Assembly: GCF_023055435.1 (NCBI RefSeq)
Contig: NW_025963857.1
Location: forward strand, 17,546,001 to 17,610,000
Length of the DNA stretch: 64,000 bases
Origin: Haliotis rufescens
Lineage: Eukaryota
Direction of reading: 5' to 3'
Position numbers and translations under genes: made by a program
Notes under the pieces: generated by a model
Seen by the model: the letters and a program-made list of their open reading frames with translations, nothing else
Told to the model about the DNA's origin: nothing
Database searches by the model: none
Part shown: piece after piece, positions 9,308 to 62,390 of the stretch
How positions within the stretch are numbered: position 1 is the stretch's first letter
Layout: every line of letters starts with the position of its first letter

Positions 9308-9787
9308 ACCGACTCCGTGGTCTATTGGTAGAGCGTCCGCCCCGAGAGCGGAGGGTNNNNNNNNNNNNNNNNNNNNNNNNNNNNNNNNNNNNNNNNNNNN
9401 NNNNNNNNNNNNNNNNNNNNNNNNNNNNNNNNNNNNNNNNNNNNNNNNNNNNNNNNNNNNNNNNNNNNNNNNNNNNNNNNNNNNNNNNNNNNNNNNNNNN
9501 NNTCATATCAAAAGACGTTAAAAGATGGTAACTTGTTGTTACCCTGACTGGCGCTCGGCATTAAGGGGCTAAAACAGGTCGGCATACTGTGTCAATATAC
9601 TGTGTCTGAGTTGGGTATTCATTTTAAACTGCGGCATAGTATCTCAGTGAGCTAGCACTATCAATCTGCATCAGCCAGGACTAGTATATGTAGCCACACC
9701 CCCGCCACACACACACGCGCGCATGCACGCCGCTATATAACTGCAATAACATTGGACGCGACGTTAAACCCAATTTCACCTCACCTC
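9308..9787 (+). mobile_element. tRNA-derived SINE family C ((CACCT)n tail), spanning an assembly gap (N 9357-9502)
   Basis: gaccgactccgtggtctattggtagagcg head; body matches 57508-57872. Confidence 0.85.
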
Positions 9788-10976: not shown

Positions 10977-11151
10977 AGGGGCGGTCGGGTAGCCTAGTGG
11001 TTAAAGCGTTCGCCCGTCACGCCGAAGATTCGGGTTCGATTCCCGACGTGGGTACAATGTGTGAAGCCCATTTTTGGTGTCCCCCGCCGTGATATTGCCG
11101 GAATAATGCAAAAAGCGGCGTAAAACAATACTCACTCACTCACTCACTCAC
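10977..11151 (+). mobile_element. tRNA-derived SINE family A, full length
   Basis: A box tagcctagtgg, B box ggttcgattcc, (ctca)n tail, 12-bp TSD tgtaatggtatg. Other copies ~11485-11655(+), 14302-14463(+), 18087-18190(-), 18218-18385(+), 23614-23776(+), 43130-43303(-), 44302-44460(+), 50460-50560(+). Confidence 0.95.
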
Positions 11152-17290: not shown

Positions 17291-18724
17291 TGTACGCAAG
17301 TTAATTGAAAATAATTGGGTTTTGAATATTTGTGGGGAATAGTTTACGCAAATACGCTGCTTATCTGTAACCCTGCTACGCCATTTGTCAATTTTGGCTT
17401 TCCTGGAACCATCTCCGGAAAACTATTGACTCTCAGCGATATCGTGGAGTTGCATGATAATAAAATAAAAATGAAATATCGCAGAAAATGTCTTTAAACC
17501 ATCTCCCTTACTTCTTAAAATATTTGAACGCAAATGCAAATGTTATCCACGTAAACGCGGTCACATCAATATAACAAGTGACAGTGATAGATAGTATTGC
17601 AAGACAACAGAACAGCACGAATTGGGAAAATTAAAGACATCAAGAGTTACCCCCCTTAATTACCCAAGCTCCCCCCGGTGTCACTGTATAGAGAGCTCCG
17701 CGAGCGGGGAATCGCTGTGAGGAGCGTGAAGGGGGCCATGGCGTCATGCGTTGTCACGACGACGCTTATCAATTGTCTTTGGAATGGATGGGTTTCTGCG
17801 ACTCATGACTCATCGTTTGTGTGTCAGATTCCACAATCAAGGCCAATTTAGCACAGGTTTCTCTTGGAACGGATCAGGTATGTGGAGAGTTGACGAGTTG
17901 CTTTACAACAGCCTATTAGAAATAGATTTAGAAATAAGTTATTATTATTCTCTGGCGTTGATGTTTCCTATTTACAGGAACTAAGGAAACATCAGTAACG
18001 TCATAATAAAGCCAAGTCTACTATTTATTACACGCTTAACTAATGCCTATATCATAAACAAATAGGAAGGCCATTTCTAAAGTGTAGTGAGTGAGTATGG
18101 TTTTAAGCCGCTTCTAGCAATATTCCAGCAATTTCTCTTCGGCGTGACAAGCGAACGCTTTAACCGTTAGGTTACCCGACCTTCCCCTTTAAAGTGTAAC
18201 GATTCACATATCCTCCTGGGGTGGTCGGGTAGCCATGTGGTTAAAGCGTTCGCTCGTCACGCAGAAGACCCGGGTTCCATTCCCGATATGGGTACAATGT
18301 GGGAAGCCCATTTCTGGTGTCCCCCGCCGTGGTATTGCTGGAATATTGCTAAAAGCGGCGTAAAACCTTACTCACTGACTGACTGACATATCTTCCTATC
18401 TTTACCATGTAACCTTGACGACCTTCTTGTAGTAGGTGAGTGAGGTTGGTTAATCCCCTGTCAACAGCATGTTAGTTATATCAAGGGGTATCAGCTGGGA
18501 GGAAAGCCGGAAGTGACGCAGGTCTTAGTTTCTCACCTTGGTGAAACCCATGAGCAAGTGTATGGTGCTGATAAACCTAGAAACATAACCGGGGAGATTA
18601 TGAGATTCAAACCCACGATCACGACACGTCTAAGGGGCGAACTAAGACGACTGAGCCACCCGTACCCTTCTCATCAAGAGTATAATCAACTTTTTTCAGG
18701 TAAAAGAGTGAGAAGATTAACAAG

Positions 18725-21712
18725 ATGAACTGGGTTCCCAGAGACTTTACGGAAAAGGATAATCAGCCATTATCTGCTCTTCACGGAACAGACTTTAAGC
18801 TGCAGGAATCATTAATGAGCCTCCGGTTTTCTCAAGGCACCAGCTCCGACTCTGCGGCAGCGTGCAGTGAATTAACCAGATGGAGAATCGAGTCGTCAAG
18901 GTGGGGCATAGAGTCGTCAAGGTGGGGCATAGGGTCGTCAAGGAGTGGAATTGAGTTGGCAAGGTGGGGCATTGAGTCGTCAAGGAAGGGCTATGATCAT
19001 CACCAAACAACACCTTGTTCTACAGTTGATGCATCACCACCTCCACGTATATCCCCCTCTACACAGAACAGCCAGCAGCATCTCCCGTCATCCTCCCGCC
19101 CTGCGTCATCAGCCCGCGGGGTGGCCAGGCAGGTAACGGAATTCATCAACAAAACTTGTGTATTACATTGGACAATGAGATCTTTTATTTATCGCGGTAG
19201 GACCTTTGTCAGCTGTTATCCTGTGAGGGGAATCCGAGTACTCCGCGATGCATTATCAGAGTGAGTGAGTGAATGTTTCATGCAACAGTCAGCAAAATTC
19301 TGTCTATGTCCGCGGCCTGTACATAATGAAGTTTGGACCAGACAAACCAGTGATTGAAACATAAGCAAAGTAGGCTGACCACCCGATACAAGCAAAACGG
19401 CATTAGCCACTACTAACTCACTCAGTCACCTTTAAGCAGCTTTCAGTTAGGTGAATATGGCGTTTATATGACAACGGCATGCAATATTGTATTCCATTGT
19501 TGTATTAAAGAAATGCATGTTCGTGATCAGGTGAGGTGAAATGGGGTTTAACGTCGCGTCCGAGATTATTGCACTTCTATAGCGAAGTGCATGCACGCGC
19601 GTGCGTGCGTGCGTGCGTTTGTGTACGTGTAGTAGTCCGGACTGATGCCGATTTATAGATATACTCAAGCAATGTATATTCGTGATAACGTTATACATGA
19701 ACTTGTATTCCAGAGAAGTAATCAAGCAATGCATGTTCATGATGAAGTTTTACATGTGTTCCAGATAATATTCAAGTAATGCTCGTTCCTTAAAAAGGTT
19801 TACTATAATTCCATAGTGTACCCTAGCAATGCTCGTTCGTGATGAAGGTTTACTATTATTCCACAGATGTACTCAAGCGACGCATATTCGTGATGACGTT
19901 ATACTTGTATTCCAAACAACTTGTACTTCTTGTTTACAGGCTCCATCATGTGGTGTGTCTGTGAAGACGTGTCAAACTTCAGATTTTCCAAATGACGACG
20001 AGCGTCACCGAAAACAGATTAAAGCTGTGAGTGAAAATATAAAAGAGTGCAAATTTTCGGACTTCGGTCGCCCGGGAATGAATTGGAACATGGATTTGAA
20101 ACTCTCCACGAAGAAAGGGATAATGCCTTACCTCACAACAGGGGAAATGTTATTGGAATCTCAAACAGACAATCAAGACAAAATACGTTGTGCTGCTGCC
20201 AGAGAGGAACTGGAATTAGGCTCTCCTGTTGGACCTGAGCACGATGAATCCGGTGAAACCGACCTAGATCTGTTCTCCATTCATCCTGAAATATGTACAG
20301 ATACTCGTACAGCCAGATCTACCATTGACCTAACATCAGACACATCTGGATCTGCCATTGACCTTACGTCAGCCACATCTGGATCTGCCTTTGACCTAAA
20401 ATCAGACACATCTGGATCTGCCATTGACCTAAAATCAGACACACCTGGATCTATCATTGACCTTACGTCAGACACATCTGGATCTGCCATTGACCTAAAA
20501 TCAGACACATCTGGATCTGCCCTCGACCTAAAATCAGACACATCTGGATCTGCCATTGACCTAAAATCAGACACACCTGGATCTATCATTGACCTTACGT
20601 CAGACATATCTGGATCTGCCATTGACCTAAAATCAGACACATCTGGATCTGCCCTTGACCTAAAATCAGACACATCTGGATCTGCCATTGACCTAAAATC
20701 AGACACAACTGGATCAAGGTGTGGCACATATAGATCTGCCATTGACCTTACGTCGGACACATCTGGATCTATCATTGACCTTACGTCAGACACAACTGGA
20801 TCTGCCATTGACCTAAAATCAGACACATCTGAATCAAGGTGTGGCACATATAGATCTGCCATTGACATCACGTCAGTCACAACTGGATCTATCATTGACC
20901 TTACGTCAGACACAACTGGATCTGCCATTGACCTAAAATCAGACACATCTGGATCAAGGTGTGGCACATATAGATCTGCCATTGACCTCACGTCAGACAC
21001 AATTGGATCTGCCATTGACCTCACGTCAGACACAACTGGATCTGCCATTGACCTCACGTCAGACACAACTGGATCTGCCGTTGACCTAAAATCCGACACA
21101 GCTGAATCATCTATTAACCTAACACTAAGCACATCTGGACGTCATATATCAGTTTTATCGTCATGGTGCCGGAAGGATGTAACGCTGTCAAACACCAAGG
21201 AAGCGTTCAATGAGAGGCCGCCATGTCGAAGAAACCCAGCAACAATTTTAACAATTTTGTTTCGTTATCATGATTCTCGAGAAATGACCAAACCATATAT
21301 AGAAGCAAGAGCAAGAGACTCCAGTTCACCGTCTGCTGTGGAACCATCGAGAGCCAAACACCCCCAGCTCAAAATGGAAGGTGTTTGTCAACATAAGAGA
21401 AAAACTGCGGAATCGGAAAATCCACATGGCAATACCCCGGCCAAGAAAAGGCAAGGTAAATGTCACAGTGTAAACCCTTGGACCAGGAAGTACATACGTG
21501 AGGACAGAGAGCGTAGTCTCACATCAGGAGATCTGTGCTGTGGACAGTCTCTGGAACCACCCCCTGCTCCCCGGAAAGATCCCTCCCGTGCAGCTACTGC
21601 CAGGAGGGCTATTGGTCAAGGCGGGGGTGGGGCTAGTCCACCAGTGTCCAGTGGGGGCAAGTCCGACGGTGCTGCTGTTGCATGTCGGGTTAGGAGGAGT
21701 CTTTTTGTGTAG
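18725..21712 (+). CDS. Predicted ~726-aa low-complexity protein with tandem SUMO-interacting / SUMO-acceptor repeats; join(18725..19132,19940..21712)
   Basis: Acceptor ttttttcag|g at 18700; ATG at 18725 with an in-frame upstream stop; donor CAG|gtaacg at 19132; acceptor ttgtttacag|GCT at 19940, phase 0 matched; 1773-nt open final exon; 23 frame-preserved 33-nt units; basic KRK...PAKKR NLS-like motif. No recognised homolog. Confidence 0.62.
19480..19915. repeat. Degenerate ~40-bp intronic tandem repeat (caagcaatgcatgttcgtgatgaag...), interrupted by a SINE-C 3' fragment (19529-19660)
   Basis: Repeated caa(g)caatgc...ttcgtgat...tattcca units. Confidence 0.7.
20315..21140 (+). repeat. 33-bp coding minisatellite, 23 units (SGSAIDL[T/K]SDT), with three 21-nt in-frame inserts (RCGTYRS)
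   Basis: Unit tctggatctgccattgacct(aaaa/tacg)tcagacaca; no frameshifting indels. Confidence 0.95.
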
Positions 21713-22402
21713 TTCCCCTTCTCCTGGACACGAGGACCACCATGTGGTTACATCAGGATCTCTTAAGACGCCTTTCCTTAACTTGTATTCAACCTTCTAT
21801 ATGATACAGAACAATGAATAATCCAACAAACAGGTTAGTTTGTGTTTTTTTATTGGAAAATGAAGGCATTGCGAATACTGATTTCATAAAAGCAATCAGC
21901 TAGCATAATGTGCAAAACATTAAATTCGACTCGTACATATATTCGAATATATTTATTCTTTGAAGTTAAAATATGTTGACACATCGGCTGTACATGTGTA
22001 TATAACACACAGAACGCCCTCATCTTTCTACTTTATCTACCTTGGGCGGCGAGGACACGAACTGAAACTTCTCTGGCTGCTTGAATAGAAAAGTAATGGG
22101 AATATACAGCACAGGGTAATACGGGATGTCATGAACGCAACACCAAGAAATAGAGCCACAAAGCTCTGCAGCTCACCTGAATTATGTAGAAATAATGGCG
22201 GATATGTTTAAGGTCGGATTGGAATTACGTGTGCAGTGTTTACAGACACCATAGCTGTCATTCATTCAAAGTTTCAGCTCCACGTGCCTTGTAGTTTCAG
22301 AGATGTTGAAATGCAGTCACCTTAGAACAACGGGGCTACCTGAAGGTCAAAGGTCGTAGCTTAATCCAAAATCAGTACGAACCCCGAAAAGCAACAAAAG
22401 TA

Positions 22403-22950
22403 TTTTTTTTTTCTTTTATTGTTTATAAAAGGAAGCACCTGTTACATAAAATGGTCTTCCGCCCAGGGTAGCAGAAAGCACATGACACATTACACAACCT
22501 TTTTTACGGATATCTTACATTAATGTCTTAAGTAAAACTAAAATTAAAGTAAAAGCTCCTCTTCATTAATGATACAGCATCCAAGCATTCTGCTGATTAC
22601 CTGTCTCGAAAGCAATATCTTTTTCAATCTTGTATCGTGAAAAGGCCTCCTTTTTATGAACATTAAAATAAGATTTTGAAATTTTCATCTAAAAATATAG
22701 AATTTTGCAACAAGTAAAAGTAAATCGAACTTTATATGTTTTTATGTTCTTTTTAACTCCAAAAAGTATCAATTCTGCATAAAATGTCATATTATAAACA
22801 TGAACACACTGGTCTATCCAAACTGACACTTCATCCCAAAAGTGTTTTATTACAGCACAGTCCCAAAACAAGTGAGTAATTGTTTTCTTTTCATTGAGAC
22901 AGAAGGAGCACAGATCATTTTGAACATAACTAAGTATAAAAACAAACGTA
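22403..22950 (-). mobile_element. 3' fragment of an L1/Tx1-clade LINE
   Basis: LCSFCLNEKKTITHLFWDC...FW...ELILFG zinc-binding motif C-terminal to RT; aataaa plus poly(A) tail at 22403-22420 on the minus strand. Confidence 0.8.
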
Positions 22951-23844
22951 TTATTGTCCCGCATATCACACCTCCTAATGCTACATGCACAAGGGTCTGA
23001 GTAATGGACAAAATGACATTTCAATATGGCCGCCGTCGGAATTATGTGAGCAAGTTTTAGACGCCATAGCTGGGATCATTCATGCAACATAAGCTAACTC
23101 GACTTTAAAGGTGAGCTACACATATTTCCGGCGTTGTGAGACATGGTTGTCAAGTGATATAAGGAATGGCCGCAATGGCGATATCTATGAAGTATCTTGA
23201 CACGTCTCAGTTGTCTCACGTCTTCACATGTCTTCGAAGTTGTCTGTCACTTCACCGTAGGTACCTGGAGGAAAGAGAAAGCGACGTCGATGACAACATG
23301 ACTCAAAGACGCCTGGTCATTAGTATAAGGATTTGGTCGGAAGGCGAGGGAGGGGGAAATTCAGCAATATGGCGTCCGTGGGGACACATTTTTTGTGTGT
23401 GCATTTAGTTGAACAACGATGAAAAACAAAAAAACAAAAACAACGTTCACTAGTATTCGAAACAGATTGTTCCTTCCCACCAATCGAAACACATTGTTCC
23501 TTCCCACCAAGCGATCTCAGTGATCCAGACATTACATGCACTTTTACTACCACAGTTTGACGATTGTTAAGATCACTTTGTGGAACGGGACATGTATGTT
23601 TCCAAATATACGCGGGGCGGTCCGGTAGCCTAGTGGTTAAAGCGTTCCCTCGTCACGCCGAAGACCCGAGTTCGACTCCCGACATGGGTACAATGTGTGA
23701 AGCCCATTTCTGGTGACCTCCGCCGTGATATTGCTGGAATATTGCTTAAAGCAGCGTAAAACCTCACTCACTCACTCCAAATTTACGCCATTGTGAATAC
23801 CTGGAAAAACCTTGCACACGTCCCACGTGACGTGACATGAGGTG

Positions 23845-24169: not shown

Positions 24170-24892
24170 CTATCTAGCATGAAACAATAACTCACCTTCC
24201 AGGTAAAACAATCGGTTTCTCAGTATTTCCCATCTTGTTGTTGGGTCGAGCTGCTGGAAGGCCGCAGTGCGTCGTGTTGGTGTGCCACCATCCTGCTCAT
24301 GTGCCTTTGTGCTATAATAGCATTTTACTAACTTATTCATACATCTTTTCCTTAATTCGAATAATTCATTCTTATGCGCCAACACGAAGTATCGCATGAG
24401 ACGATCCTTATTCTCCTTATGGTATCTTTCAGAAGTTATTTCCATCCTTGTTGGCAAGTAGATATACGTATTCATATTCATGCCAGGTAACTCTTTTTCT
24501 ATCAATGTTTTACACGTTTCCAGCAGAAACAACAGCTTGTACTTCGCAGCCAGTGGGAGTAGATACTCGACATTGTCTTCATCAACAACGTTGACGCTCC
24601 TGAAGTTGGGGTAGATGGAGGTCAGCATGTCCACAATGTGGTCAACACGTCCGTCCAACTTGGCCACGGCTTTGTTGGTTTTCCTAGGAGGAGACTGGTG
24701 GTCCGGGCGTTGCTGGAACTCACTCGCCAGTGTCGGGGACATCAGAGAGATTATATTCAGGTCCACGTGAAGCTCGTGGTCTTCCACCTGTATGACGGCG
24801 TCTGATTTCTTATTCCCCTCTGTAAAGAAGGTTTTCACCTCTTTTAAACGATCCTCGGGCCTTTCGTTCCCAAACGTCGCAAACAAGGACAT
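24170..24892 (-). CDS. BTB/POZ domain-containing protein (240 aa from the first ATG; single coding exon, possibly extended 5' through an acceptor near 24953)
   Basis: SDAVIQVEDHELHVDLNIISLMSPTLASEF...MLTSIYP...VDEDNVEYLLPLAAKYKLLFLLETC is a canonical BTB motif, followed by a BACK-like helical region; ORF is intact. Confidence 0.85.
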   Translation of the reverse strand: MSLFATFGNERPEDRLKEVKTFFTEGNKKSDAVIQVEDHELHVDLNIISLMSPTLASEFQQRPDHQSPPRKTNKAVAKLDGRVDHIVDMLTSIYPNFRSVNVVDEDNVEYLLPLAAKYKLLFLLETCKTLIEKELPGMNMNTYIYLPTRMEITSERYHKENKDRLMRYFVLAHKNELFELRKRCMNKLVKCYYSTKAHEQDGGTPTRRTAAFQQLDPTTRWEILRNRLFYLEGELLFHAR

Positions 24893-24996
24893 GTTCCTAT
24901 GGATTACTGTAGCAGATGACTTTAATTTGCTGCTGGTCTTGCTGTCCGTGTTCTGGAAATAAGAATTATCCAGTGGACAAATCACCGTACACTACG

Positions 24997-30637: not shown

Positions 30638-33600
30638 TCATGTTTGGTTTTTATTCATTGCAGTCTTGTCCCGAATTACAAAAAAGTTTTTGGCAAGGGA
30701 GTTGACTTTGGCCAGATGAGATGGCAGTGGCAAGGATGCGAGGCCAGCCTTGCCCAAATTCCGGACACCCTCAAGCACCGATGGTCCTTCAAACTTGATG
30801 CGGCAGCGGAATGGTCTGTCTTTGTTGGCCATCATGGGGACAAACTTAGTTCCACGAAATTTTACATCCATCTGAAAAACAAACACTGGTTGCTATTGCT
30901 ATACATGTGCTATACTCTCATGATTTGACAACAGTGTCGGTATTGAGGGTGATCCTGGGGTCCTAGACCCACTTGCACAAAGCAATCTTAGCACTACGAC
31001 TATCTTAAGTCTATATTAAAGTATGGCAGTTATGATCATCGTAGCGCTGAGATCGCTTTGTGCAAGTGGGTCCTCACGTCTGCTCCTATAGTATTGTGAT
31101 GCAACTCAAACTGAAAAATGTACCAACTGTTATAATGATAATATATAGAGAAACGCCCAGAAAAGGCCAACACTGTAATAGCCCTGAGGATACCTTTAAC
31201 ATTAGACAAACTGACTGGTTGGGCTCGTGCAAAGTTGCATCTTGAGTACAGGGGCCCATCTGACCATGCTAAATGAATATGCAGAGATTATGAAGATTGT
31301 GAGTAATTGTCTCATAGCATAAGCATTCGTCAGACGGTCGGCCTACTGATCTTTTGATGAGCATGTGGAAATGGGCACACATTAAGACTCATGGGGTCTT
31401 CAAGGCCATCCTCGAATATCCAGTGAATTTTGTTCCCATTTTCACAACATATACCATCGACCCTTCACCACTACAGCATTGCTTAAGAAGTGATGTCACC
31501 ATATCCATCAAAGAATATCACTTTGGCATAAATCTACATTCAAAATTTCACCCTGACAAGTGAGTTCTGAGTTGTACGAAACAGTCCCAAATCCATTTAA
31601 CTTGCATACATAAAATATGTTTCAACAAGAGGCTTGAGTGTACTGAACAGCTACCTTGTATTCCAGCTTCTCCAGAGTTGGCTGGTCAGCACTCCCAAAT
31701 GTGTGGTCAAGCAACTCCATCCGTTGTTTCTTCTCTTCTTCATTCTCACCTCTGAGTCGCTTGTCGAAGTCCTTCACTGGTTCAGATGACGCTGCAACAT
31801 TTGGCCAAACATCACAGCAGGAGAAACAAACAAACATCACAGCAGGAGAAACAAACAAACATCACAGCAGGAGAAACAAACAAACAAGGTGGTGAGGTGA
31901 AATGGGGTTTAACGTCGCATCCAAGATTATTGCACTTATATAGCGACGTTACAAACAAACAAACATCACAGCAGGAGAAACAAACAAACATCACAGCAGG
32001 AGAAACAAACAAACAAGGTGGTGAGGTGAAATGGGGTTTAACGTCGCATCCAAGATTATTGCACTTATATAGCGACGTTACAAACAAACAAACATAACAG
32101 CAGGAGAAACAAACAAACATCACAGCAGGAGAAACAAACAAACAAACAAACATCACAGCAGGAGAAACAAACAAACAAACATCAGAGCAGGAGAAACAAA
32201 CATCAGAGCAGGAGAAACAAACAAACATCAGAGCAGGAGAAACAAACAAACATCACAGCAGGAGAAACAAACAAACATCACAGCAGGAGAAACAAACAAA
32301 CAAACATCACAGCAGGAGAAACAAACAAACAAACATCACAGCAGGAGAAACAAACATCACAGCAGGAGAAACAAACAAACATCACAGCAGGAGAAACAAA
32401 CAAACATCACAGCAGGAGAAACAAACAAACAAACATCACAGCAGGAGAAACAAACAAACAAACATCACAGCAGGAGAAACAAACAAACAAACATCACAGC
32501 AGGAGAAACAAACAAACATCACAGCAGGAGAAACAAACAAACAAGGTGGTGAGGTGAAATGGGGTTTAACGTCGCATCCAAGATTATTGCACTTATATAG
32601 CGACGTTACAAACAAACAAACATAACAGCAGGAGAAACAAACAAACATCACAGCAGGAGAAACAAACAAACAAACAAACATCACAGCAGGAGAAACAAAC
32701 AAACAAACATCACAGCAGGAGAAACAAACATCAGAGCAGGAGAAACAAACAAACATCAGAGCAGGAGAAACAAACAAACATCACAGCAGGAGAAACAAAC
32801 AAACATCACAGCAGGAGAAACAAACAAACAAACATCACAGCAGGAGAAACAAACAAACAAACATCACAGCAGGAGAAACAAACATCACAGCAGGAGAAAC
32901 AAACAAACATCACAGCAGGAGAAACAAACAAACATCACAGCAGGAGAAACAAACAAACAAACATCACAGCAGGAGAAACAAACAAACATCACAGCAGGAG
33001 AAACAAACAAACAAACATCACAGCAGGAGAAACAACCATCACAGCAGGAGAAACAAACATCACAGCAGGAGAAACAAACAAACATCACAGCAGGAGAAAC
33101 AAACAAACAAACATCACAGCAGGAGAAACAAACAAACAAACATCACAGCAGGAGAAACAAACAAACATCACAGCAGGAGAAACAAACAAACATCACAGCA
33201 GGAGAAACAAACAAACAAACATCACAGCAGGAGAAACAAACATCACAGCAGGAGAAACAAACATCACAGCAGGAGAAACAAACAAACATCACAGCAGGAG
33301 AAACAAACAAACAAACATCACAGCAGGAGAAACAAACATCACAGCAGGAGAAACAAACATCACAGCAGGAGAAACAAACAAACATCACAGCAGGAGAAAC
33401 AAACAAACAAACATCACAGCAGGAGAAACAAACAAACAAACAAACATCACAGCAGGAGAAACAAACAAAAAAGTCTAAATATGGTCTCAATATTGTCAAG
33501 AACGAGATTGCAGTAGACAATAAGATATTTTTTTCAGCTTGAAATTTCTGCCTATAATTCTAGAGAATGGAACGACTAACGCAAAGTCGCATCAACATGT

Positions 33601-36600: not shown

Positions 36601-39600
36601 AACTTTGAAAGAAAACAGGATATGAACACAGGATAAGCTTATCTTAGTAAACACACCTTTACGCTTTCTGTTCGACTTCCTTGTAAGGGGGTTTTCCCTT
36701 TCTTCAATGCTCCTGTACTTCCCAAATGATCCCTGAAATAAGACAGAAACTACATACTACTTTCCTTTAAACAAAAAGGCATGAAAATGAACGGGAAAAT
36801 TGAATTTTTTTACTTCTTTAGCCATTGTTAGTTTAATCGATGCAATGTGTAACAACAGCTGAACCATACGTATCACTTATATCAGTATCCACTTGACCTC
36901 AGTCTGGACAGACAATAGGCTAGGCCATGCATCTTACCTGGCTGTGTTTGTTGAGAGCCAGCTCTACCAAGGAGGGGACGTGACTTCCAACCAGCTGGAG
37001 GCTGTGAACCTCGTCTGTCTTGAACACTGGTAGCAGGGCCTGTAGCACATCAATGGTGTAGAGGAGAAGAGAGGTGAGGGGTTTAACAATGCGTTCAAGA
37101 TTGTTGCACTTATATAGCGACATGCATGCACGAATGTGTGTGTGGGGCTGCTTGTAATATTTTGGACTAATGTTTATTTTATACCATGCCGCAGTTTAAC
37201 ATGAATACCCCACTCAGACACAGTATACTGACTCCAAGCCGTCCAGTCTTTGTTTTAGCCCCTTAATGCCGAGCGCAAGATTGGGTAACAACAAGTACCA
37301 TCTTTTAACGTCATTTGGTATGACACGGCCGGGGATGGAACCCCGGACTTTCCGCTCTCCGGGCGGACGCACTACCTCTAGACCACGGAAGCGGTCCTTT
37401 CCACTTAGGTGAAACCCAATAAATGGGTATGGTGCTGTCAAACCAAGAATCAACAGGGCAAATCTGGGTTTGAAACCTGTGAAGTAGGATACTGGCACAC
37501 CTATTATAGGAAGTGAAGTGCTCAGCAAACTGAGCCCTGTGCAGTCCTAACCCCCCTCCACCAGCTATGTTTGTTTGTTTGTTTTGTTTGTTGTTTAACG
37601 CTGCACAGAGTTTTTGTTTTAGCTCCTTAACTTCGAACACCAGGCAGGGTAACAACAAGTGCAAATTTTAAAGTCTTTTGGTATGACGCAGCTGGGGATC
37701 GAACCCCTGACCTTCTGTTCTCTGGGTAGACTTTCTACCTCTAGACCACAGAGGTGGTCTTTACCACAAGACCACGGAGGCAGTCTCTACTCCCAGACCA
37801 CGGAGGCTGTCTCTACCACTAGACCACGAAGGCCGTCTCTACCACTATATCACAGAGGCGGTCTCTACCACTAGACCACGGAGGCGATCTCTACCACTAG
37901 AAAACGGAGGCTGTCTCTACCACAAGACCACGAAGGCGGTCTCTACCACTAGACAACGGAGGCTGTCTCTACCACAAGACCACGAAGGCGGTCTCTACCA
38001 CTAGACCACGGAGGCGATCTCTACCACTAGACAACGGAGGCTGTCTCTACCACAAGACCACGAAGGCTGTCTCTACCACTAGACCACGAAGGCAGTCTCT
38101 ACCACTAGACAACGGAGGCTGTCTCTATCACTATATCACGGAGGCGGTCTCTACCACTAGACCACGGAGGCGGTCTCTACCACAAGACCACGAAGGTGGT
38201 CTCTACCACTAGACCACGAAAGCAGTCTCTCCCACTAGACAACGGAGGCTGTCTCTATCACTATATCACGGAGGCGGTCTTTACCACTATATCACGGAGG
38301 CGGTCTCTACCACTAGACCACGGAGGCGGTCTCTACCACTAGACAACAGAGGCTGTCTCTACCACAAGACCACTAAGGCGGTCTCTACCACTAGACCACG
38401 AAGGCAGTCTCTACCACTAGACAACGGAGGCTGTCTCTATCACTATATCACGGAGGCGGTCTCTACCACTAGACCACGGAGGCGGTCTCTACCACTAGAC
38501 CACTGAGGTCTCTACCACTAGACAACGAAGGCGGTCTCTACCACTAGACCACGGTGGCTGTCTCTACCAATAGACCACGGTGGCTGTCTCTACCAATAGA
38601 CCATGGAAGCTGTCTCTACCACTAGACCATGGAGGCTGTCTCTACCACTAGACCACGGAGGCGGTCTCTACCACTAGACCACGGAGGCGGTCTCTACCAC
38701 TAGACCACGGTGGCTGTCTCTACCAATAGACCACGGTGGCTGTCTCTACCAATAGACCATGGAAGCTGTCTCTACCACTAGACCATGGAGGCTGTCTCTA
38801 CCAATAGACCATGGAAGCTGTCTCTACCACTAGACCACGGAGGCGGTCTCTACCACTAGACCACGAAGGCGGTATCTACCATTAGACCACGGAGGCGGTC
38901 TCTACCACTAGAACACAGAGGCGGTCTCTACCACTAGACCATGGAGGCGGTCTTTACCACTAGACCACGAAGGCAGTCTCTACCACTAGACCACGGAGGT
39001 TGTCTCTACCTCGACAACACAGAGGTGGTCTCTACCACTTGACCACGGAGGCGGTCTTAACCTCTAGACCACAGAGGTGGTCTCTACCACTAGACCACGG
39101 AGGCGGTCTCTACCACTAGACCTCGAAGGCGACTACTACTAGACCATGGAGGTGGTCTCTACCACTAGACCATGGAGGCGGTCTTTACCATTAGACCACG
39201 GAGGCGGTCTCTACCACTAGAACACAGAGGCGGTCTCTACCACTAGACCATGGAGGCGGTCTTTACCATTAGACCATGGAGGCGGTCTCTACAACTAGAC
39301 CATGGAGGTGGTTTCTACCACTAGACCATGGAGGCGGTCTTTACCATTAGACCACGGAGGCGGTCTCTACCACTAGAACACAGAGGCGGTCTCTACCACT
39401 AGACCATGGAGGCGGTCTTTACCATTAGACCATGGAGGCGGTCTCTACAACTAGACCATGGAGGTGGTTTCTACCACTAGACCATGGAGGCGGTCTTTAC
39501 CATTAGACCACGGAGGTGGTCTCTACCACTAGAACACAGAGGCGGTCTCTACCACTAGACCATGGAGGCGGTCTTTACCATTAGACCATGGAGGCGGTCT

Positions 39601-42600
39601 CTACCACTAGACCATGGAGGCGGTCTTTACCATTAGACCACGGAGGCGGTCTCTACCACTAGAACACAGAGGCGGTCTCTACCACTAGGCCCCATAGGCG
39701 ATCTAATGGCGGAGTTTATAGAGGAGAAAAAGATGGAAAGGACAGCAATGGTCTTGGGTGAAGAGAAAAGTTGTTTCGCTCTCAGATCACACTTTTTATA
39801 TGGACCATCGCTGCTGTCATGTGACCTTGATGAAATATCACCTATCACATTACTACCTGTCTCCCAAGCTTAATTGTTTTTGGTATTTGGAGGTTTCTGA
39901 AGGTTTCTGAAGGAAAAGTGGGGAGGCATGTCTGGTCCTTAGTCCTTAAGTGGGTCCTTAGACGTAGAAATGCAGGATAAGTATACTTATCCTGCATTAC
40001 TCCTTAATGCATCTGTATCAGATGGTATGGAGGCGGGAATACCTTCAGATGTCTAGGAAAAAAAACTCGATAACTCACACCCAAAAGAAGACACATGTTT
40101 TCCAATTAACCGTAAGGCGGGAAAAGCATAAAAACACCGTAACTGTTGGGTAAGTTCAATCTTATTTACAGACGGAACATAAGAATTGAGAGAACTGTGT
40201 ACACACATGGTAATAACGGATGATAGCGAAAGCTAAAATCTTTCCCAACTGTATTACCGAGCCAAAGCTGATAGAAGCAATTCTTTTCACTGGGAGTGGC
40301 TTAGACAATACCGCGCAGGAGGGAAACTGGCTCCAGATAGGATGACTTCATTATTTGCGTCGGTGGTTGGTTACCTGCGCCATCCTTCGTCTTCAAGAGC
40401 CACATCTCAAAGATAATGACTTGCGAAAACTGTGTCGGACCTCCAAAAATGCTGACAGAACAGTTACTATGTAAAGCCATGGTAGAGGCTACCGCTCTGA
40501 TTTTGTGAAAATTATTCGCTCTTGGAGCATCAAGTTTGGCGATATCGTAAGCCTGTTGGATGACTGTGTGTAACCATAGAGATATGGTTTTGCAAGGAAC
40601 TTCGGTCATGGATGTATGGCATACAAGGATGAAAAACTAGTTTTTGAGTGGCGGATGAAAACTCGTAGCGAACAGGGCACAAGATGAGTTCACCATCATC
40701 TTCAACTCCTACAGTCGTCGAAATTGGTGGAAAAGTGAAGGAACAATCGTGTTGGCCTTGTAGTTGATTTTTCGCTATAAAATGCCAGCACAACCCGAGA
40801 TGTACTGCTCCCTGCATGCCATGTTCAAACCAGACGGGTGACGTTAAGTGTGTGTGACTGAGGTCATAAAATTAGGATGCGTTGAAAGACTTGAAGGGCG
40901 CCCCTCGCAAACCTCAAAGTACCGCATTCAATTCCCAAGCAGGGGGACAGAATTTTGTCTTCTGGTCCTCAAGCCTAAAAGAGCGTAGTATGGCCTGTAG
41001 TTGCGGAACCTTGGTCACCTTACAATTCTCCAGAACGGCCAATACTGAATTGAGCGCAACCAAGTACGGAGTAATGGTGCTACCCTTTAAGTCTCTTTTG
41101 GTATGCAAGTGTAAGAGGTGTTCGGCTAAGAGTTGTGGTGACATGGGATCTTGATTTTTTGGCCTTGCAAATGGTTCTAAAAGATCACCACTTGTAATCG
41201 TATAAACCCCTGGTAGAGAGACGATGCACTAATGCAATAGCTTTGGCAGCTCTTAGCACTTTAAGCCTTTTTAAGACGAACCAAGTGTGCAGATGAAATC
41301 TGCCTGGCCTTGGGTGAGGCAATTTGCTGTGAGGGTGGATGAGTATATTGGACCACTGAGGGAGGGGTAGAGGATCATTTTCTGCAAGATTTCTGAGGTC
41401 AACAACACCCCCTTCGTCGGCCACCACGGCGCATCCAAGTCAGAGAAAGGTTCCTTGTCTGTTTGATCATTTGTATAACTCTGGGAAGTAGAATAGGTGG
41501 CGGAAAAGAGTACGCTCTCAGCCCTACCCAGGGGATGCTGAATGCGTCCACTGCCCAAGCCTGCGGATCCGGTAATGGGGAGACATACTAGGGCTGGGAT
41601 GAGTCCAAATTTACTACCCGGGTACCCACCCCCTTATTACCCGACCCTACCTTGGTACCCGCTGTTGGTCTCAAGAGGTAGGTACAAACTGTCCGATTGG
41701 GAAAAGTTTGACCGTAGCTCTGGTAAAATCATTAAATGTGTTTAGATACATGTATGAACCGATCTGGTGTATACGCTGAAGCTGACTGCAGTTTTAATTA
41801 TATTCAAGCATATAAAAGTCAGAAGGAATGGGCATAGTAGTCAGAAAGAACTGCGAACATTAGTTTAAACATAGAGTTTTAGATACTTTTTGTTATTAAA
41901 CAATATATCACGTGATGAAGCACGGGTCTGGGTAGTCCTGTGGGTACCCAGGTCCTACTCAGTACCCACCCGACCCGAGTACCTGGGTTACCCGTCCCAG
42001 ACCTAAGACATACGTCTTAATCTTACCTCAATGAAGTTGTCTTCATCTTTAGCCTTGATCCTGGAGATGACTACAAACTGGGTCTTGGGGTAGTGCACCA
42101 TGTAGATGACATCGTTAGGCTTGTACACCGTGGGGTGCTTCACATCTACGATGTGAACACGACTCCAGAGGGCGCCACCAAACATGTTCACATTCACATG
42201 CTGTCAACAGAATGCATATGTTACTGGCCACAAACAACAGCCATTGTTAAAATTCCAATTGTCTATATGCTAACAGTCCATTACGAAATATATGAGAAAA
42301 AAACGTGTCATGATTCACAGTATGTTTGTGCATTGAGAATTTGAATTTGACGATATGATACACGATAAACAATGATTCAAGGTTTAATTCTGTATTGATT
42401 TCAATATTTACTTATCTTAATATTTACTCATTTTGGCAATTAACCAATATCTACTCAGGTCATCATTGTCTTAATGACCATCATAAAACAATGAGTGTGA
42501 GTGAGTGAGTTGGGTTTAACGCCGCTTTTAACAGTATTCCAGTTATATCGCGGCGTGTCAGCTTAATGTGGGAGGAAAGCCCGAAAGGGATGCAAGTCTC

Positions 42601-45600
42601 TGACGTTTACCACTTCGGTGAAAGCCACGAGCACAGGTATGGTGCTGACAAACCTAAAAACATAATCAAGGCGAACTGGGATTCGAACCCACAATCATAG
42701 GTTTCTGGTGCGCCCAAGGTACGCATCTCTGCACACCCTAGACAACTGGGCCACCCGTGCCCCCCATGAAACAATGAGACGATCTGATCCGATAATAGCA
42801 AACACTGCTAGAAGAGACCAAGATTACATTAGTATAAACAAATCATGCAAGTTGACACAAACTTTGATCACTTTGTAAAATAACATGGTTCAAGGGCAGT
42901 AACTGTATATGCTAAAAATCTAAAAACATGTAGCTGTAGCAAGGGAATTAACTCTGGAAAACAATAACTTACAGGACCAATTTTCGAACTCAGTCATGAC
43001 AAGTATCTCTCAGATACCGGTAAGCATGCAAACTTTCATTCATGTAATTTCAGTAGTTTCTGTGTAAAGTTATCCCACTGCAGTCACTTTGAAAAGCACA
43101 GAGCAAGGGCCATAACTCTGTAAAATATGAGTGAGTGAGTGAGTAAGTGAGTATGGTTTTATGCCACTTTTAGCAAAATTCCAGCAATATCATGGCAGGG
43201 GACACCAGAAATGGGCCTCACACATTGTACCCATTTCGGCAATCGAACCCGGGTCGTCAGCGTGACGAGCGAACGCTTTAATGACCAGGCTACCTGACCG
43301 CCCCTCTGTAAAATATGAATTAAAGACACCAATATTCCAGCTCATTGAAGGTCATGACCAGTAATATCAGTGTGTAAATTTCATTTCTCTAACTTATATA
43401 GTTTTTTGAGAAAATGTGTCCCCTTTGAGAAGTGGACGGACGGAAATAGGAAGGACAGACAGATAGACGAACTCCATTTCGGTGGAGCAGGGGATAAAAA
43501 TAATTTGTTGTCCCCATACCACTTATTATATGAAGGGGTTCTGCTATGTTTAGCGTGTTTAGGGTAGGTGTGCTTCAATTATTTTCAAAACTATGGAGTA
43601 ACAGTGTTTGGAATGTACTTCCATGACATACTTGTCTGATATCAGTTTAACCACAACTCACCACGTCATCGAAGTACAGTTTCATTTTGGACACAATCAG
43701 CTTCCTGAATGCATTTGGACTGGAGATGAAATGGACCTTATCTGAAAACCACAGAACCAAATTCTTCATTCCCAAAGTTCAGGGCATCATACGGTCATGC
43801 GTCATACATTATGCAGAGATAGAAACTAACCATTGCTAACTGTTTCAGTCTACTAGTCCTTATAATGATAAGTTTATAACATATACCAAAACCCTTAAAA
43901 ACAGCAAATTTCTACCAGTCCTTATGATACCTTAATTATTGGGCAGTTTGGCAAGGACTTCAGGTCTAGTGCCAATATCTGATGCTGTTATGGTGTGCAT
44001 TTTGAAAACCTGGTCTAGAAAGTCTAGACAATACCCTGGCTTCTGTGTGAATTGAAAAGTTTCAAACAGTGCTTTTAAAATGAATGTAAATAATGCTGAT
44101 CTCTATGATCAAAGGACAGTACCTTGACCTCGGAGTTCGCAAACACTCCATTTTCTACTCTCTGAATGGATCTGGCTGTCTGAAATGATATGAATGATGT
44201 ATAAGACATGATGAAAATCCAAGTTGTCAAGCAGCCTACTTCTTATCAGACCCAGACCTGTGTTTGTTATTTAATGCCATATTCCAGCTTCAATGACCAG
44301 ACAGGACGGTCGGGTAGCCTAGTGGGTAACGTGTTCACTCATCACGCCGAAGACCTGGGTTTGATTTTCGACACATGCACAATGTCTGAAGCCCATATCT
44401 GGTGTCTGATATTGCTGGAATATTGCTAAAAGCGGCGTAAAACCATACCCACTCATCACTCATGACCAGACAATCCACTCCATGGGGATACGAAGCTAGG
44501 CAACAAACAAAGTCACAAAGTCTGATGACCCAATCCATTTAGTCACTGCTTACAACCAGCACAGGTCAAGGATCCCCATTGGGGATCAGACACTGGCATC
44601 AGAATAATCATTTATATTATGCCTCAAAGTAAGATTGACCAATCAGACAGCAGAACTACTGACCCCACATGAGCCTGTGTACCGTCAGTAAAAATCCAAG
44701 ATGGTTGTTACTGATCCATTATGAGACTATACCATCAGCAACAGCCATCATGAGACCGTATACCATCAGCAACAGCCATCATGAGACCGTATATCGTCAG
44801 CAACAGCCATCATGAGACCGTATACCGTCAGCAACAGCCATCATGAGACCGTATATCGTCAGCAACAGCCATCATGAGACCGTATACCGTCAGCAACAGC
44901 TATCATGAGACCGTATATCGTCAGCAACAGCCATCATGACACCATATACCATCAGCAACAGCCATCATGAGACTGTATACCGTCAGCAACAGCCATCATG
45001 AGATTGTATACCGTCAGCAACAGCGATCTGTCCCGTGAAGATCCAGGGTAGAATAGGTCTTCAGCAACCCATGCTTGCCGTAAAAGGTGACTATGCTTTT
45101 CGTAAGAGGTGACTAACGGGATTGGGTGGTCAGGCTCGCTGACTTGGTTAATGCATGTCAATCACTGGATGTATTATATTTGTTTTTGATTTGTTCATAT
45201 CAAACAGCCAAAAATGATACAAGGATTCATTAGAAACTATAGCTTTATCATGTTTAATACAGTTTTAATTTTGAACAAACATTACATACTATGTACATGA
45301 TGTATAGTCAGCATGGTTAGATAGTCTGTCTTACCATGCTTACAGACCCTGATACAAATATATATCAAATACAGCCCATGCAAGTCTATAATGTTTGGAA
45401 AGTCTGAAAATGAAGAGAGTCTCTGGGCTCACTTTTAATATATTTTTTATTAAGATAATTGAACAACTGTTTTTTTCTGTTCGAACTGTTCATTTCAGAG
45501 ACTAGATGTTAGTCTAATGGTTAGGCTGATGTCAGAGATTGTACTTACAGATGAGATCAAGATCTCCAGCAGCCTGAATGTCAACATCTTCTTCCTGCAA

Positions 45601-55452: not shown

Positions 55453-55623
55453 AGTGAGTGAGTGAGTGAGTATGGTTTTACGCCGCTTTTAGCAATATTC
55501 CAGCAATATCACGGCGGGGGACACCAGAAATGGGCTTCACACATTGTACCCATGTCGGGAATCGAACCCGGGTCTTCGGCGTGACGAGCGAACGCTTTAA
55601 CCACTAGGCTACCCGACCGCCCC
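55453..55623 (-). mobile_element. tRNA-derived SINE family A, full length
   Basis: TSD aactacaaatag; intact A and B boxes. Confidence 0.93.
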
Positions 55624-60759: not shown

Positions 60760-62390
60760 CTACACAGGTGGAAGTTCATCATCACTATCGCCATCATCAT
60801 CAGCAGCAACCGAATCACCGGTATCATCAGACTGATTACACCTGTCATCCATGTCAATATCATCACCTTTCATCACTCTGAACACATTATCTTGGACTCT
60901 GAGGAAGACTACATTTTGTGAACTTTCTGAACGGGGATGATACAATGACCTTAAACCCATGACACTTTCTTCCTGCACAATAATGAAATGGCCTCAATTC
61001 ATTTAGTGATTTTTTTAATTGACTCTGAGAAATACAAATCCGTTTGGAATGTCTGGTTGACTGTCGTTTGACACCAAGAGATATCCTCAGATTGTCACAA
61101 ACTTTGAATATTGCACTTGCTGCACCTGTTATGGCGTTTTTGGTCTTGTTGGCACCAAGTTGTCTGAGCGCCTTCTGATTCTTTATTCTGACCAGCGCTA
61201 GGTCAGCCTCAACACAATTTGAAATTCCTCCCTTGGTGTTGTCAAGGACAAGCTGTGTCAAGGACAAGTTCTTTCATCATCGGAGAGAGCAAGAAGCAGA
61301 CTTTAATGAGAAAGTCAATGTTCTCCACAAAATATTTACTCTGTGAAGAATGGGCAAAAAAGAATGGAATGTTCATCTTGGCATTATGGATTAGTTTATC
61401 ACTGTCTCCCTCTTTGGCTGTGTCATCAAGCTCCATTAAATGGAGAGCCCAGTGGGATAGTTGCTGGCAATAAATGTAGAATTCATCAGGTTCAAACTGA
61501 GACTTTTCTTCCACCACTGTACCAACAGCATTTACATGAAACATCATGGACATTTTTTCACAAGAATCCTTGAACGTAAAATCAAGGTATCCATAGTCGA
61601 CAAGAAAAGCTCTTAAAACTGCCTCTGACGATGTGGTCTTCTCTTCCAAAGATAGGTTGATGACAACAGGAATATTCTTCAAACCTGTGTTGTCATCAGT
61701 GATACCAAAGTATTCACGTGCCTGTTCCACAAGAACCGCTTTTCCAACATGAACAAGTAGGCCATGATGAGATTGAAAATTCCTCTTAATATTCCCATTA
61801 ACATTTGTCATGTTAAACTTGGCTTTGTAGAAGTATAGCGTCCCTGGCTGTCTAATTGACTTTGGGCTGAACAAAGCCTTGTATGCCTGCTGTGAAAACG
61901 AATATACAGTGTCGGTGTATTATATACACATATCGGATGGCATTGTTACAAAGCTAACGAGCAGTCAAAAGTTTTAATACTAGACTTTCTGTATTAGAAT
62001 CCTGACATTGAGGTGAAATACAAGTTGTTATATCATAAAGAAATATAATTTTTCTTTGCCTTCATAAAATGTCTCTGTTGGCTATCTAAATATTTTCGTT
62101 TTCATAAATATGTCTAAATGAAATACAAAGGCATATGGCATGAAATTGTGACAATACTGATAATTTGATTGGTTTAATGTGAACAAATAATGTTGGAAGG
62201 TCGAGTCCAGTCAAGATGAAATACTTCCAAAATGTCCTGCTTGTTGTGCCACCATTCAATAACAAATGATCTAAGATCAAATCTTTTGGCAGGTGTAGGA
62301 GAAAGTGCTCTGAGACTCTTGGCTCCCTCAAGCCTTACCCTGGTGAGCTGATCCCAACCGACTGGAACATGAGGTTTCTTAGCGCTGATC
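60760..62390 (-). pseudogene. Decayed Academ-type transposase (DUF6589-like), spliced, convergent with the helicase
   Basis: VPVGWDQLTRVRLEGAK (GDQLT motif), GTLYFYKAKFNMTNV, DTAKEGD, SKYFVE, EADLAL...LGANKT; frameshifts. Confidence 0.78.

Follow-up and report, generated by a model that had tools for sequence, protein, structure and literature searches.

Is a tandem repeat that stays open in one frame the core of a real protein, and what might such a protein bind with so many copies of one short motif? We addressed this question for an array of 11-residue units at 20315–21140 on the forward strand of a 64,000-nucleotide stretch of the Haliotis rufescens genome (contig NW_025963857.1, positions 17,546,001–17,610,000; hereafter the window). 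An earlier prediction, made from the sequence alone, had read this array as a SUMO reader/acceptor toggle, with units carrying IDLT as SUMO-interaction motifs (SIMs) and units carrying LKSD as SUMOylation sites. We find that the gene is real, present in a single copy, transcribed and spliced, and that the array forms the middle of its large exon. That its product, a disordered, probably nuclear and genus-restricted protein, displays a conserved DLT-type motif in multivalent form is well founded.

The array is part of a transcribed and spliced gene

Twenty-three in-frame units of 33 nt make up this coding minisatellite, together with three 21-nt inserts at 20711, 20831 and 20951 that each encode [G/E]SRCGTY. 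Splitting the frame of a 627-codon open reading frame (ORF; 19829–21712) places the start of the first unit at 20315 and the end of the last at 21136, and Tandem Repeats Finder (TRF) reports periods of 33, 66 and 120 nt in this region. The unit consensus is G-S-A-I-D-L-[T/K]-S-D-T-S. Position 7 is Thr in 12 of the 23 units (five AIDLT, four IIDLT and one each of TIDLT, AIDIT and SINLT; T units) and Lys in the other 11, which read DLKSD (K units). This splitting reproduced exactly the unit count of the original prediction, down to the T subtypes. Two further statements were borne out: the units and inserts are all multiples of three, and the unique sequence on either side remains free of stops in the frame of the array, for 375 nt upstream (19940–20314) and 572 nt downstream (21141–21712), where 375 and about 570 nt had been claimed.

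An open frame inside a repeat is by itself weak coding evidence, as illustrated by a minisatellite elsewhere in the genome (L002, G000:C556:48807823-48811599) that is open by chance for 1000–1259 codons in three of six frames. Across the present array two of six frames are open (0, 14 and 27 stops in the forward frames; 22, 38 and 0 in the reverse frames). The antisense ORF of 283 residues at 20281–21132, confined to the array, is a by-product of the repeat and was rejected as a gene. What argues that the array is coding is its flanks, its splicing and RNA, and its orthologues, not the open frame itself.

Four public runs (X1, X3, X4 and X15) were compared over 18500–22300; the type of X3 and X4 is recorded only as a guess, 'RNA?'. 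One contig of each of X3 and X4 joins position 19132 directly to 19940, skipping 807 nt. The intron so defined (19133–19939, forward strand) has GT..AG ends, and the junction that had been predicted is therefore present in RNA-like contigs. Both runs have zero depth in those intron bins that are free of dispersed repeats, and likewise in bin 21929–22055, past the transcript end near 21830. The joint is absent from X15, which covers every bin, introns included, and so behaves as DNA. Within the intron lie a high-copy dispersed repeat at about 19516–19642 and a 50-nt tandem repeat at 19704–19914 (TRF).

The first coding exon (18700–19132, forward strand) is supported by its splice-site sequences (acceptor ttttttcag|G at 18699|18700 and donor CAG|GTAACG at 19132|19133), by X3 and X4 contigs, and by homology to the N-termini of the two orthologues introduced below. 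Given the in-frame TAA at 18701, translation must start at one of the in-frame ATGs at 18725 and 18815. The X3 and X4 contigs on 18696–19063 extend 5′ by a further 158 and 109 letters, respectively, which together with the acceptor at 18699|18700 indicates that an upstream 5′ non-coding exon exists. This first coding exon holds a second coding minisatellite (18890–18985, forward strand; 21 nt, 4.6 copies by TRF) that encodes heptads of the SRWGIES type. Their number varies: 21 nt are absent at 18973 in X3 and X4, and heptads are more numerous in the orthologues, with more than twice as many in H. rubra.

In the large exon, the array is preceded by a unique N-terminal part of 125 codons (19940–20314, forward strand), which contains a conserved block, MNWN-DLKL...PY, and is followed by a unique C-terminal part of 190 codons (21141–21712, forward strand) that ends in a TAG at 21710–21712. 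The 3′ untranslated region (21713–21828, forward strand) is delimited by contig ends and carries AATGAA at 21813. Transcript contigs terminate at 21827–21830 in X3 and X4, and at 21828 in X1, which is nearly identical to the window (one difference in 779 nt). By arithmetic, the coding exons at 18700–19132 and 19940 to about 21828 amount to 136 + 590 codons; the exons were analysed separately and never joined into one sequence. The coding parts of the X3 and X4 contigs differ in length from the window by 21 nt (the heptad at 18973) and by 6 nt (at 21672), both in frame. In X15, a run under another organism label, one of two contigs lacks 1 nt at 21658.

A single-copy gene restricted to abalones

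Among 5.8 billion proteins the large exon matches two, namely 'uncharacterized protein LOC124262423' of Haliotis rubra (P0001; 53% identity) and a partial protein of H. asinina (P0002). A HMMER search of 1.84 billion representatives with the C-terminal 190 residues gave 55% identity to the former (E 1.5e-40) and 51% to the latter (E 1.2e-18), and no relative outside Haliotis. A third representative match (P0003) was rejected as spurious, being a bacterial perfect-repeat protein. Protein searches restricted to residues 401–590 or 1–125 came back empty and are uninformative, as they missed even the known H. rubra protein. As far as the databases searched show, the gene is restricted to abalones, in agreement with the lineage specificity proposed at the outset.

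In both relatives, as annotated, the heptad-repeat exon and the large exon meet at the residue that matches 19132|19940, and both carry, between alignable flanks, an array in which the 11-residue period is kept. The array under study accordingly has the marks of a protein-coding minisatellite: periods that are multiples of three, open flanks, transcription and splicing, and orthologous proteins, themselves gene predictions, that preserve the period.

The gene is single-copy in its own 1.33-Gb genome. At the DNA level a search of this genome returned one weak match only, at 69%, and the 134 matches found at the protein level are all limited to the repeat part of the query. Three candidate paralogues (L002, L005 and L008) were read in six frames and rejected as unrelated minisatellites, with stops or with several open frames.

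The reading frame of the window ends at TAG 21710; both orthologues run some 17–20 residues further. A tail of the orthologue type, SPSPGHEDHH, sits in the +1 frame of the window at 21714–21818. The transcript contigs have no gap around this TAG and agree with the window at 21710, so the frameshift and truncation are real.

The unit motif is conserved while the rest of the protein diverges

Unit profiles of the three species share near-invariant S2, D5, L6, T7 and D9, and T10 is near-invariant in two of them. Position 3 is variable (A, T, I or V); Ile occupies position 4 in this species and in H. rubra, and Thr does so in six of the ten H. asinina units. The motif common to the genus is S-x-x-D-L-T-S-D-T, usually with one or two aliphatic residues before it. 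Between species, the aligned repeat region is 59–66% identical as against 48–54% for the flanks, with 48% identity to the orthologues in the 19940–20314 part. Better conservation of the unit motif than of its flanks points to a selected short linear motif and not to a mere spacer.

A comparison within the transcript data gives a measure of how fast the gene changes. X3 and X4 bear the same organism label as the near-identical X1 and carry a transcript about 4% different from the window, to be explained by an allele of high divergence or else by a sample that is mislabelled or hybrid. Nonsynonymous changes make up 34 of the 39 listed differences and synonymous changes the other five, where about 77% nonsynonymous would be expected from site counts. 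The 34:5 count is rough, coming from the best-supported rows of the difference table, and the binomial tail for a nonsynonymous excess ranges from 0.01 to 0.09, depending on the synonymous share that is assumed. This ratio indicates that the gene evolves fast. In the flanks there is no sign of purifying selection, and diversifying selection has possibly acted on them.

A predicted disordered and probably nuclear protein

No Pfam family scored above the cut-off on any exon or part of the protein, the only matches being sub-threshold and of low complexity; the PDB gave no sequence match and the ESM Atlas no usable one. The AlphaFold2 model has a mean predicted local distance difference test (pLDDT) value of 31 and no confident segment, which, for an alignment of three sequences, is weak evidence of disorder. 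The model is in keeping with the disorder originally claimed, and the protein is predicted to be intrinsically disordered.

A pattern resembling a bipartite nuclear localization signal (NLS), KRK-13 residues-KKR, lies at 21395–21451 (forward strand). Its basic residues K486, R487, K488 ... K503 and R504 are invariant in the three species, with a spacer of 13 residues here, 11 in H. asinina and more in H. rubra. A classical bipartite NLS consists of two basic clusters with a spacer of about 10–12 residues. The NLS claim thus stands as to a pattern conserved in three species, and remains a pattern match only; the protein is probably nuclear. We also considered membership of the SUMO-targeted ubiquitin ligases (RNF4, Slx5 or Arkadia type), which was rejected in view of the lack of a RING domain by Pfam and of a PDB match.

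K units as a probable recent addition to the array

In the original prediction, SIM and acceptor units alternated, one base separated the two states, and valency was tuned by minisatellite copy number and a T/K switch. The actual unit order is TTKKTKKKTKKK-TTK-TTK-TTTKT, which is no alternation and arises from higher-order duplications. A 132-nt repeat in two copies (20447–20710, forward strand) consists of one IIDLT unit followed by three K units, and the distance matrix puts units 5–8 and units 9–12 only 0–1 nt apart. In a 120-nt repeat of about three copies (20711–21070, forward strand), an insert comes first, then two T units and then one K unit; TRF gives 3.9 copies at this period with 91% matches, and the third 120-nt copy is altered.

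All 11 K units have CTA-AAA at unit positions 6–7 and are pairwise 0–3 nt apart. A single base does separate them from the first and last units, the only T units with CTA-ACA; the other ten T units have CTT, CTC or ATC followed by ACG and lie 3 nt away from the K units at these two positions. The four IIDLT units are 0–2 nt apart and therefore represent one lineage and one event. Neither orthologue array has Lys at unit position 7, where each has a single Arg. The three species have similar numbers of T units (12 in the window, about 11 and about 9 in the orthologues), and the arrays total about 10, 12 and 23 units.

We infer from these comparisons that the K units are a young, species-specific unit lineage of single origin. 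The K unit arose once, from a CTA-ACA unit by a change of C to A, and spread with the 132- and 120-nt higher-order duplications, enlarging an array whose T units are about as many as those of the orthologues. A coding minisatellite of this kind would grow and shrink by unequal exchange, always in multiples of 3 nt. Because the K lineage has one origin and no counterpart in the orthologues, what is seen is one mutation plus a few duplications, not repeated toggling, and a recurrent switch is not supported. What the locus does show is how higher-order duplication carried a new unit type through an array.

SUMO as a candidate partner of the array

The best explanation overall, which we hold tentatively and at a little under even confidence, is that the locus encodes a fast-evolving, genus-restricted, disordered, probably nuclear protein displaying a multivalent SIM-like motif. 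SIMs of the SIMb class follow the pattern [PILVM]-[ILVM]-D-L-T (Vogt and Hofmann, quoted in PMC3395311). The essential element of a SIM is a core of four residues of which three or more are hydrophobic (Val, Leu, Ile), with help from acidic or phosphorylatable flanks (PMC12751080). In RNF4, SIM2 (IVDLT) and SIM3 (VVDLT) start 12 residues apart (PMC4083429). Several features of the array suggest a SUMO partner: the D-L-T signature, the aliphatic residue before it in most units, the Ser/Asp/Thr flanks, the 11-residue spacing, the predicted disorder and the KRK...KKR pattern. The flanks are G-S before the core and S-D-T-S after it in nearly every unit, so that acidic and phosphorylatable residues surround the core in a predicted disordered context. 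In the rest of the 64-kb window, read in six frames, the SIMb pattern occurs once, as a chance match. The units would act as many weak SIMs of the RNF4/PIAS type (DLT class), flanked by Ser, Thr and Asp, and avidity, not single-site affinity, would hold nuclear partners that are multi- or poly-SUMOylated. Among candidate partners of the array SUMO ranks first, and SUMO binding is plausible, if on balance doubtful.

A number of observations weigh against such binding. The strict SIMb pattern is found in four of the 23 units (IIDLT, all of one origin), in none of the H. rubra units and in one of H. asinina; the remaining 19 here, AIDLT, TIDLT and K units among them, fall short of it. The likeness of the units to SIMs extends to D-L-T with acidic or phosphorylatable flanks and does not extend to the full consensus beyond those four. 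A core with at least three hydrophobic residues is likewise confined to the four IIDL units (0 and 1 in the orthologue arrays), and the residue preceding D-L-T is Thr in six of the ten H. asinina units. Judged by the unit profiles, the genus conserves S-x-x-D-L-T-S-D-T and not a three-residue hydrophobic core. SIM-like strings also occur in translations of plainly non-coding minisatellites of the genome, which makes motif matching after the fact weak. The preponderance of nonsynonymous differences (34 of 39), with no sign of purifying selection outside the motif, belongs on the same side. Because the functional claim rests on motif resemblance alone, we regard it as a modest lead and not as a discovery.

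The sequence of the K units agrees in part with the proposal that they are SUMO acceptors. LKSD in the 11 units fits psi-K-x-[E/D], and the lysine is not conserved, the orthologue arrays having no Lys at unit position 7. The D-x-K of the units had also been likened to the inverted SUMO consensus, which Matic et al. in 2010 are said to have described as [E/D]-x-K followed by a hydrophobic residue; the units read D-L-K-S, with Ser after the Lys, and the likeness fails. The most frequent mapped SUMO site is [IVL]KxE (PMC3395311), with Glu and not the Asp of LKSD. We consider SUMOylation of the K-unit lysines quite unlikely.

Alternatives to a SUMO-binding array

The array might instead bind a non-SUMO partner, or form a phosphorylated acidic spacer, in a fast-evolving protein of the reproduction or immunity type, its likeness to SIMb being coincidental. 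The conservation of S-x-x-D-L-T-S-D-T in place of a hydrophobic core, with strict SIMb counts of 4, 0 and 1, fits this explanation, and S-x-x-D, a CK2-type pattern, is present in every unit. The 34:5 ratio and the identity of about 50% between congeners are typical of rapidly evolving proteins, and the Pfam scan found no SUMO-pathway domain (RING or SP-RING). However, D-L-T with an aliphatic residue before it is what characterizes the SIMb class, and the 11-residue spacing, the flanks, the disorder and the NLS-like pattern all suit SIM arrays. No other short linear motif known to us is a closer match; PxDLS, the CtBP motif, requires Pro, which is absent from the units. A non-SUMO role is in our judgement possible, though somewhat unlikely.

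It is also conceivable that the protein is transcribed and functionless, a young or decaying frame that drifts neutrally and is open by chance and by its repeat period. Such a frame would account for the lack of a synonymous excess, of a homologue outside the genus and of a fold, and for the loss here of a C-terminal tail that both orthologues keep (through the frameshift and the stop at 21710); repeats of this genome, moreover, are often open by chance. Yet about 315 unique flank codons are open, and orthologue proteins align through them at about 50% identity. The transcript contigs show only in-frame length changes, the motif positions are conserved well above the flanks, and the spliced structure is conserved as well. 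These observations make a neutral frame improbable.

The explanation that survives least well is a selected reader/acceptor design in which SUMO is bound by the T units, Ubc9 SUMOylates the K units and the protein self-assembles into nuclear condensates or acts as a poly-SUMO sponge, with T/K-tuned valency. LKSD in 11 units and four strict SIMb units agree with it, networks and condensates can arise from proteins that combine multiple SUMO sites with multiple SIMs (PMC12751080), and an engineered polySIM of 10 units phase-separates with polySUMO (PMC10859935). Against it, the majority of T units fall below the SIM consensus, the inverted motif has a hydrophobic residue that D-L-K-S lacks, the acidic position is Asp where the commonest mapped site is [IVL]KxE (PMC3395311), and K units of one lineage, absent from the orthologues, give no evidence of repeated switching or of a selected mixture, all of which renders the design very improbable.

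If we return to a protein displaying a multivalent SIM-like motif, its strongest form would be a natural, nuclear poly-SIM scaffold with 10–23 DLT units, here with eleven psi-K-x-D units in addition, that could be both multi-SUMOylated and SUMO-binding and could self-assemble. This is a long shot; if true, it would be the natural counterpart of the engineered polySUMO/polySIM condensate system. Known SUMO readers carry 2–5 SIMs. Should the array bind SUMO, no natural SIM display known to us would be more multivalent, and the valencies of the three species (about 10, 12 and 23 units) would offer a ready series for the effect of valency on SUMO-dependent assembly. Even without SUMO, the locus is a clean case of a gene of narrow taxonomic range that keeps a short linear motif constant while the rest of its protein diverges by about 50% between congeners.

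Surroundings of the gene

Convergent with the repeat gene is a 271-codon ORF with a BTB/POZ domain (E 2.2e-07) at 24170–24985 on the reverse strand. Weak zf-RVT (reverse-transcriptase zinc-binding) and DUF6589 fragments at 22689–23024 and 61242–61874, also on the reverse strand, are likely transposon remnants. Contig depth at 18500–18626 and 19516–19642 is orders of magnitude above that of neighbouring bins in all four runs, with a peak of up to about 2.4 million (X15), and loose ends in these two places carry a tRNA-like consensus, GGGATTCGAACCC; the repeat is probably a tRNA-derived family of short interspersed nuclear elements.

A 22-nt motif with the core GCTTGCCGTAAAAGG recurs as two-copy tandems, with 18 matches of at most two mismatches in the window; its sites, on both strands, are 6821, 10249, 14519, 15531, 16551, 24031, 29647, 45071 and 49874, and their repetition marks a dispersed element. 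Low-scoring Rfam tRNA matches at 10989–11047 (forward) and 55547–55618 (reverse) may belong to elements of this kind. Large minisatellites occupy 736–2897 (30 nt × 72), 31806–33438 (about 25–29 nt × 52–63), 37734–39688 (26 nt × 75) and 44716–45028 (31 nt × 10). Three of these four contain no ORF of at least 130 codons that starts and ends inside them, and a 145-codon ORF lies inside the 25–29-nt array at 31812–32249 on the reverse strand. A run of 146 N is found at 9357–9502.

Comparison with known systems

The array resembles SIM2 and SIM3 of RNF4 and the SIMb motifs of the PIAS type in having, within a disordered region, an x-[IV]-D-L-T core with acidic or phosphorylatable residues after it (PMC4083429; PMC3395311). 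The spacing of neighbouring motifs is also alike, 12 residues from start to start in RNF4 and 11 here. Whereas RNF4 combines four SIMs with a RING, the present protein has 23 units and neither a RING nor any other domain found by Pfam. Unlike the RNF4 and PIAS motifs, 19 of the 23 units are missing either the Thr or the first of the hydrophobic residues, and there is no sequence homology.

Engineered polySIM (10 PIASx SIMs joined by GGS linkers) and SUMO-traps (tandem RNF4 SIMs) are similar in placing many DLT-type motifs along a flexible chain, and multivalent engineered SIMs give avidity and phase separation with polySUMO (PMC10859935, PMC3631770, PMC12751080). Those constructs are synthetic, of full consensus and of measured binding, whereas the array described here is natural, mostly sub-consensus and read from sequence. 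PML and SLX4 are nuclear and have several SUMO sites plus SIMs (PMC12751080), a combination of SUMO-site-type and SIM-like motifs also seen here in a protein that, by its sequence, is probably nuclear. They differ in having few SIMs and structured oligomerization domains that multiply valency, of which none is seen here by Pfam or AlphaFold2, and the SUMO-site motifs of the present array are unconserved in the orthologues.

With the coding minisatellites of fast-evolving, lineage-restricted, disordered proteins, the locus shares a period that is a multiple of three, higher-order repeats, copy numbers that differ from species to species and from transcript to transcript, concerted evolution of its units and rapid divergence of its flanks. 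At present it belongs to this broad class, from whose typical members it departs in that the unit motif is better conserved across species than the flanks. If the units do bind SUMO, their valency would be unusual both against the four SIMs of RNF4 (PMC4083429) and against the ten of engineered polySIM (PMC10859935).

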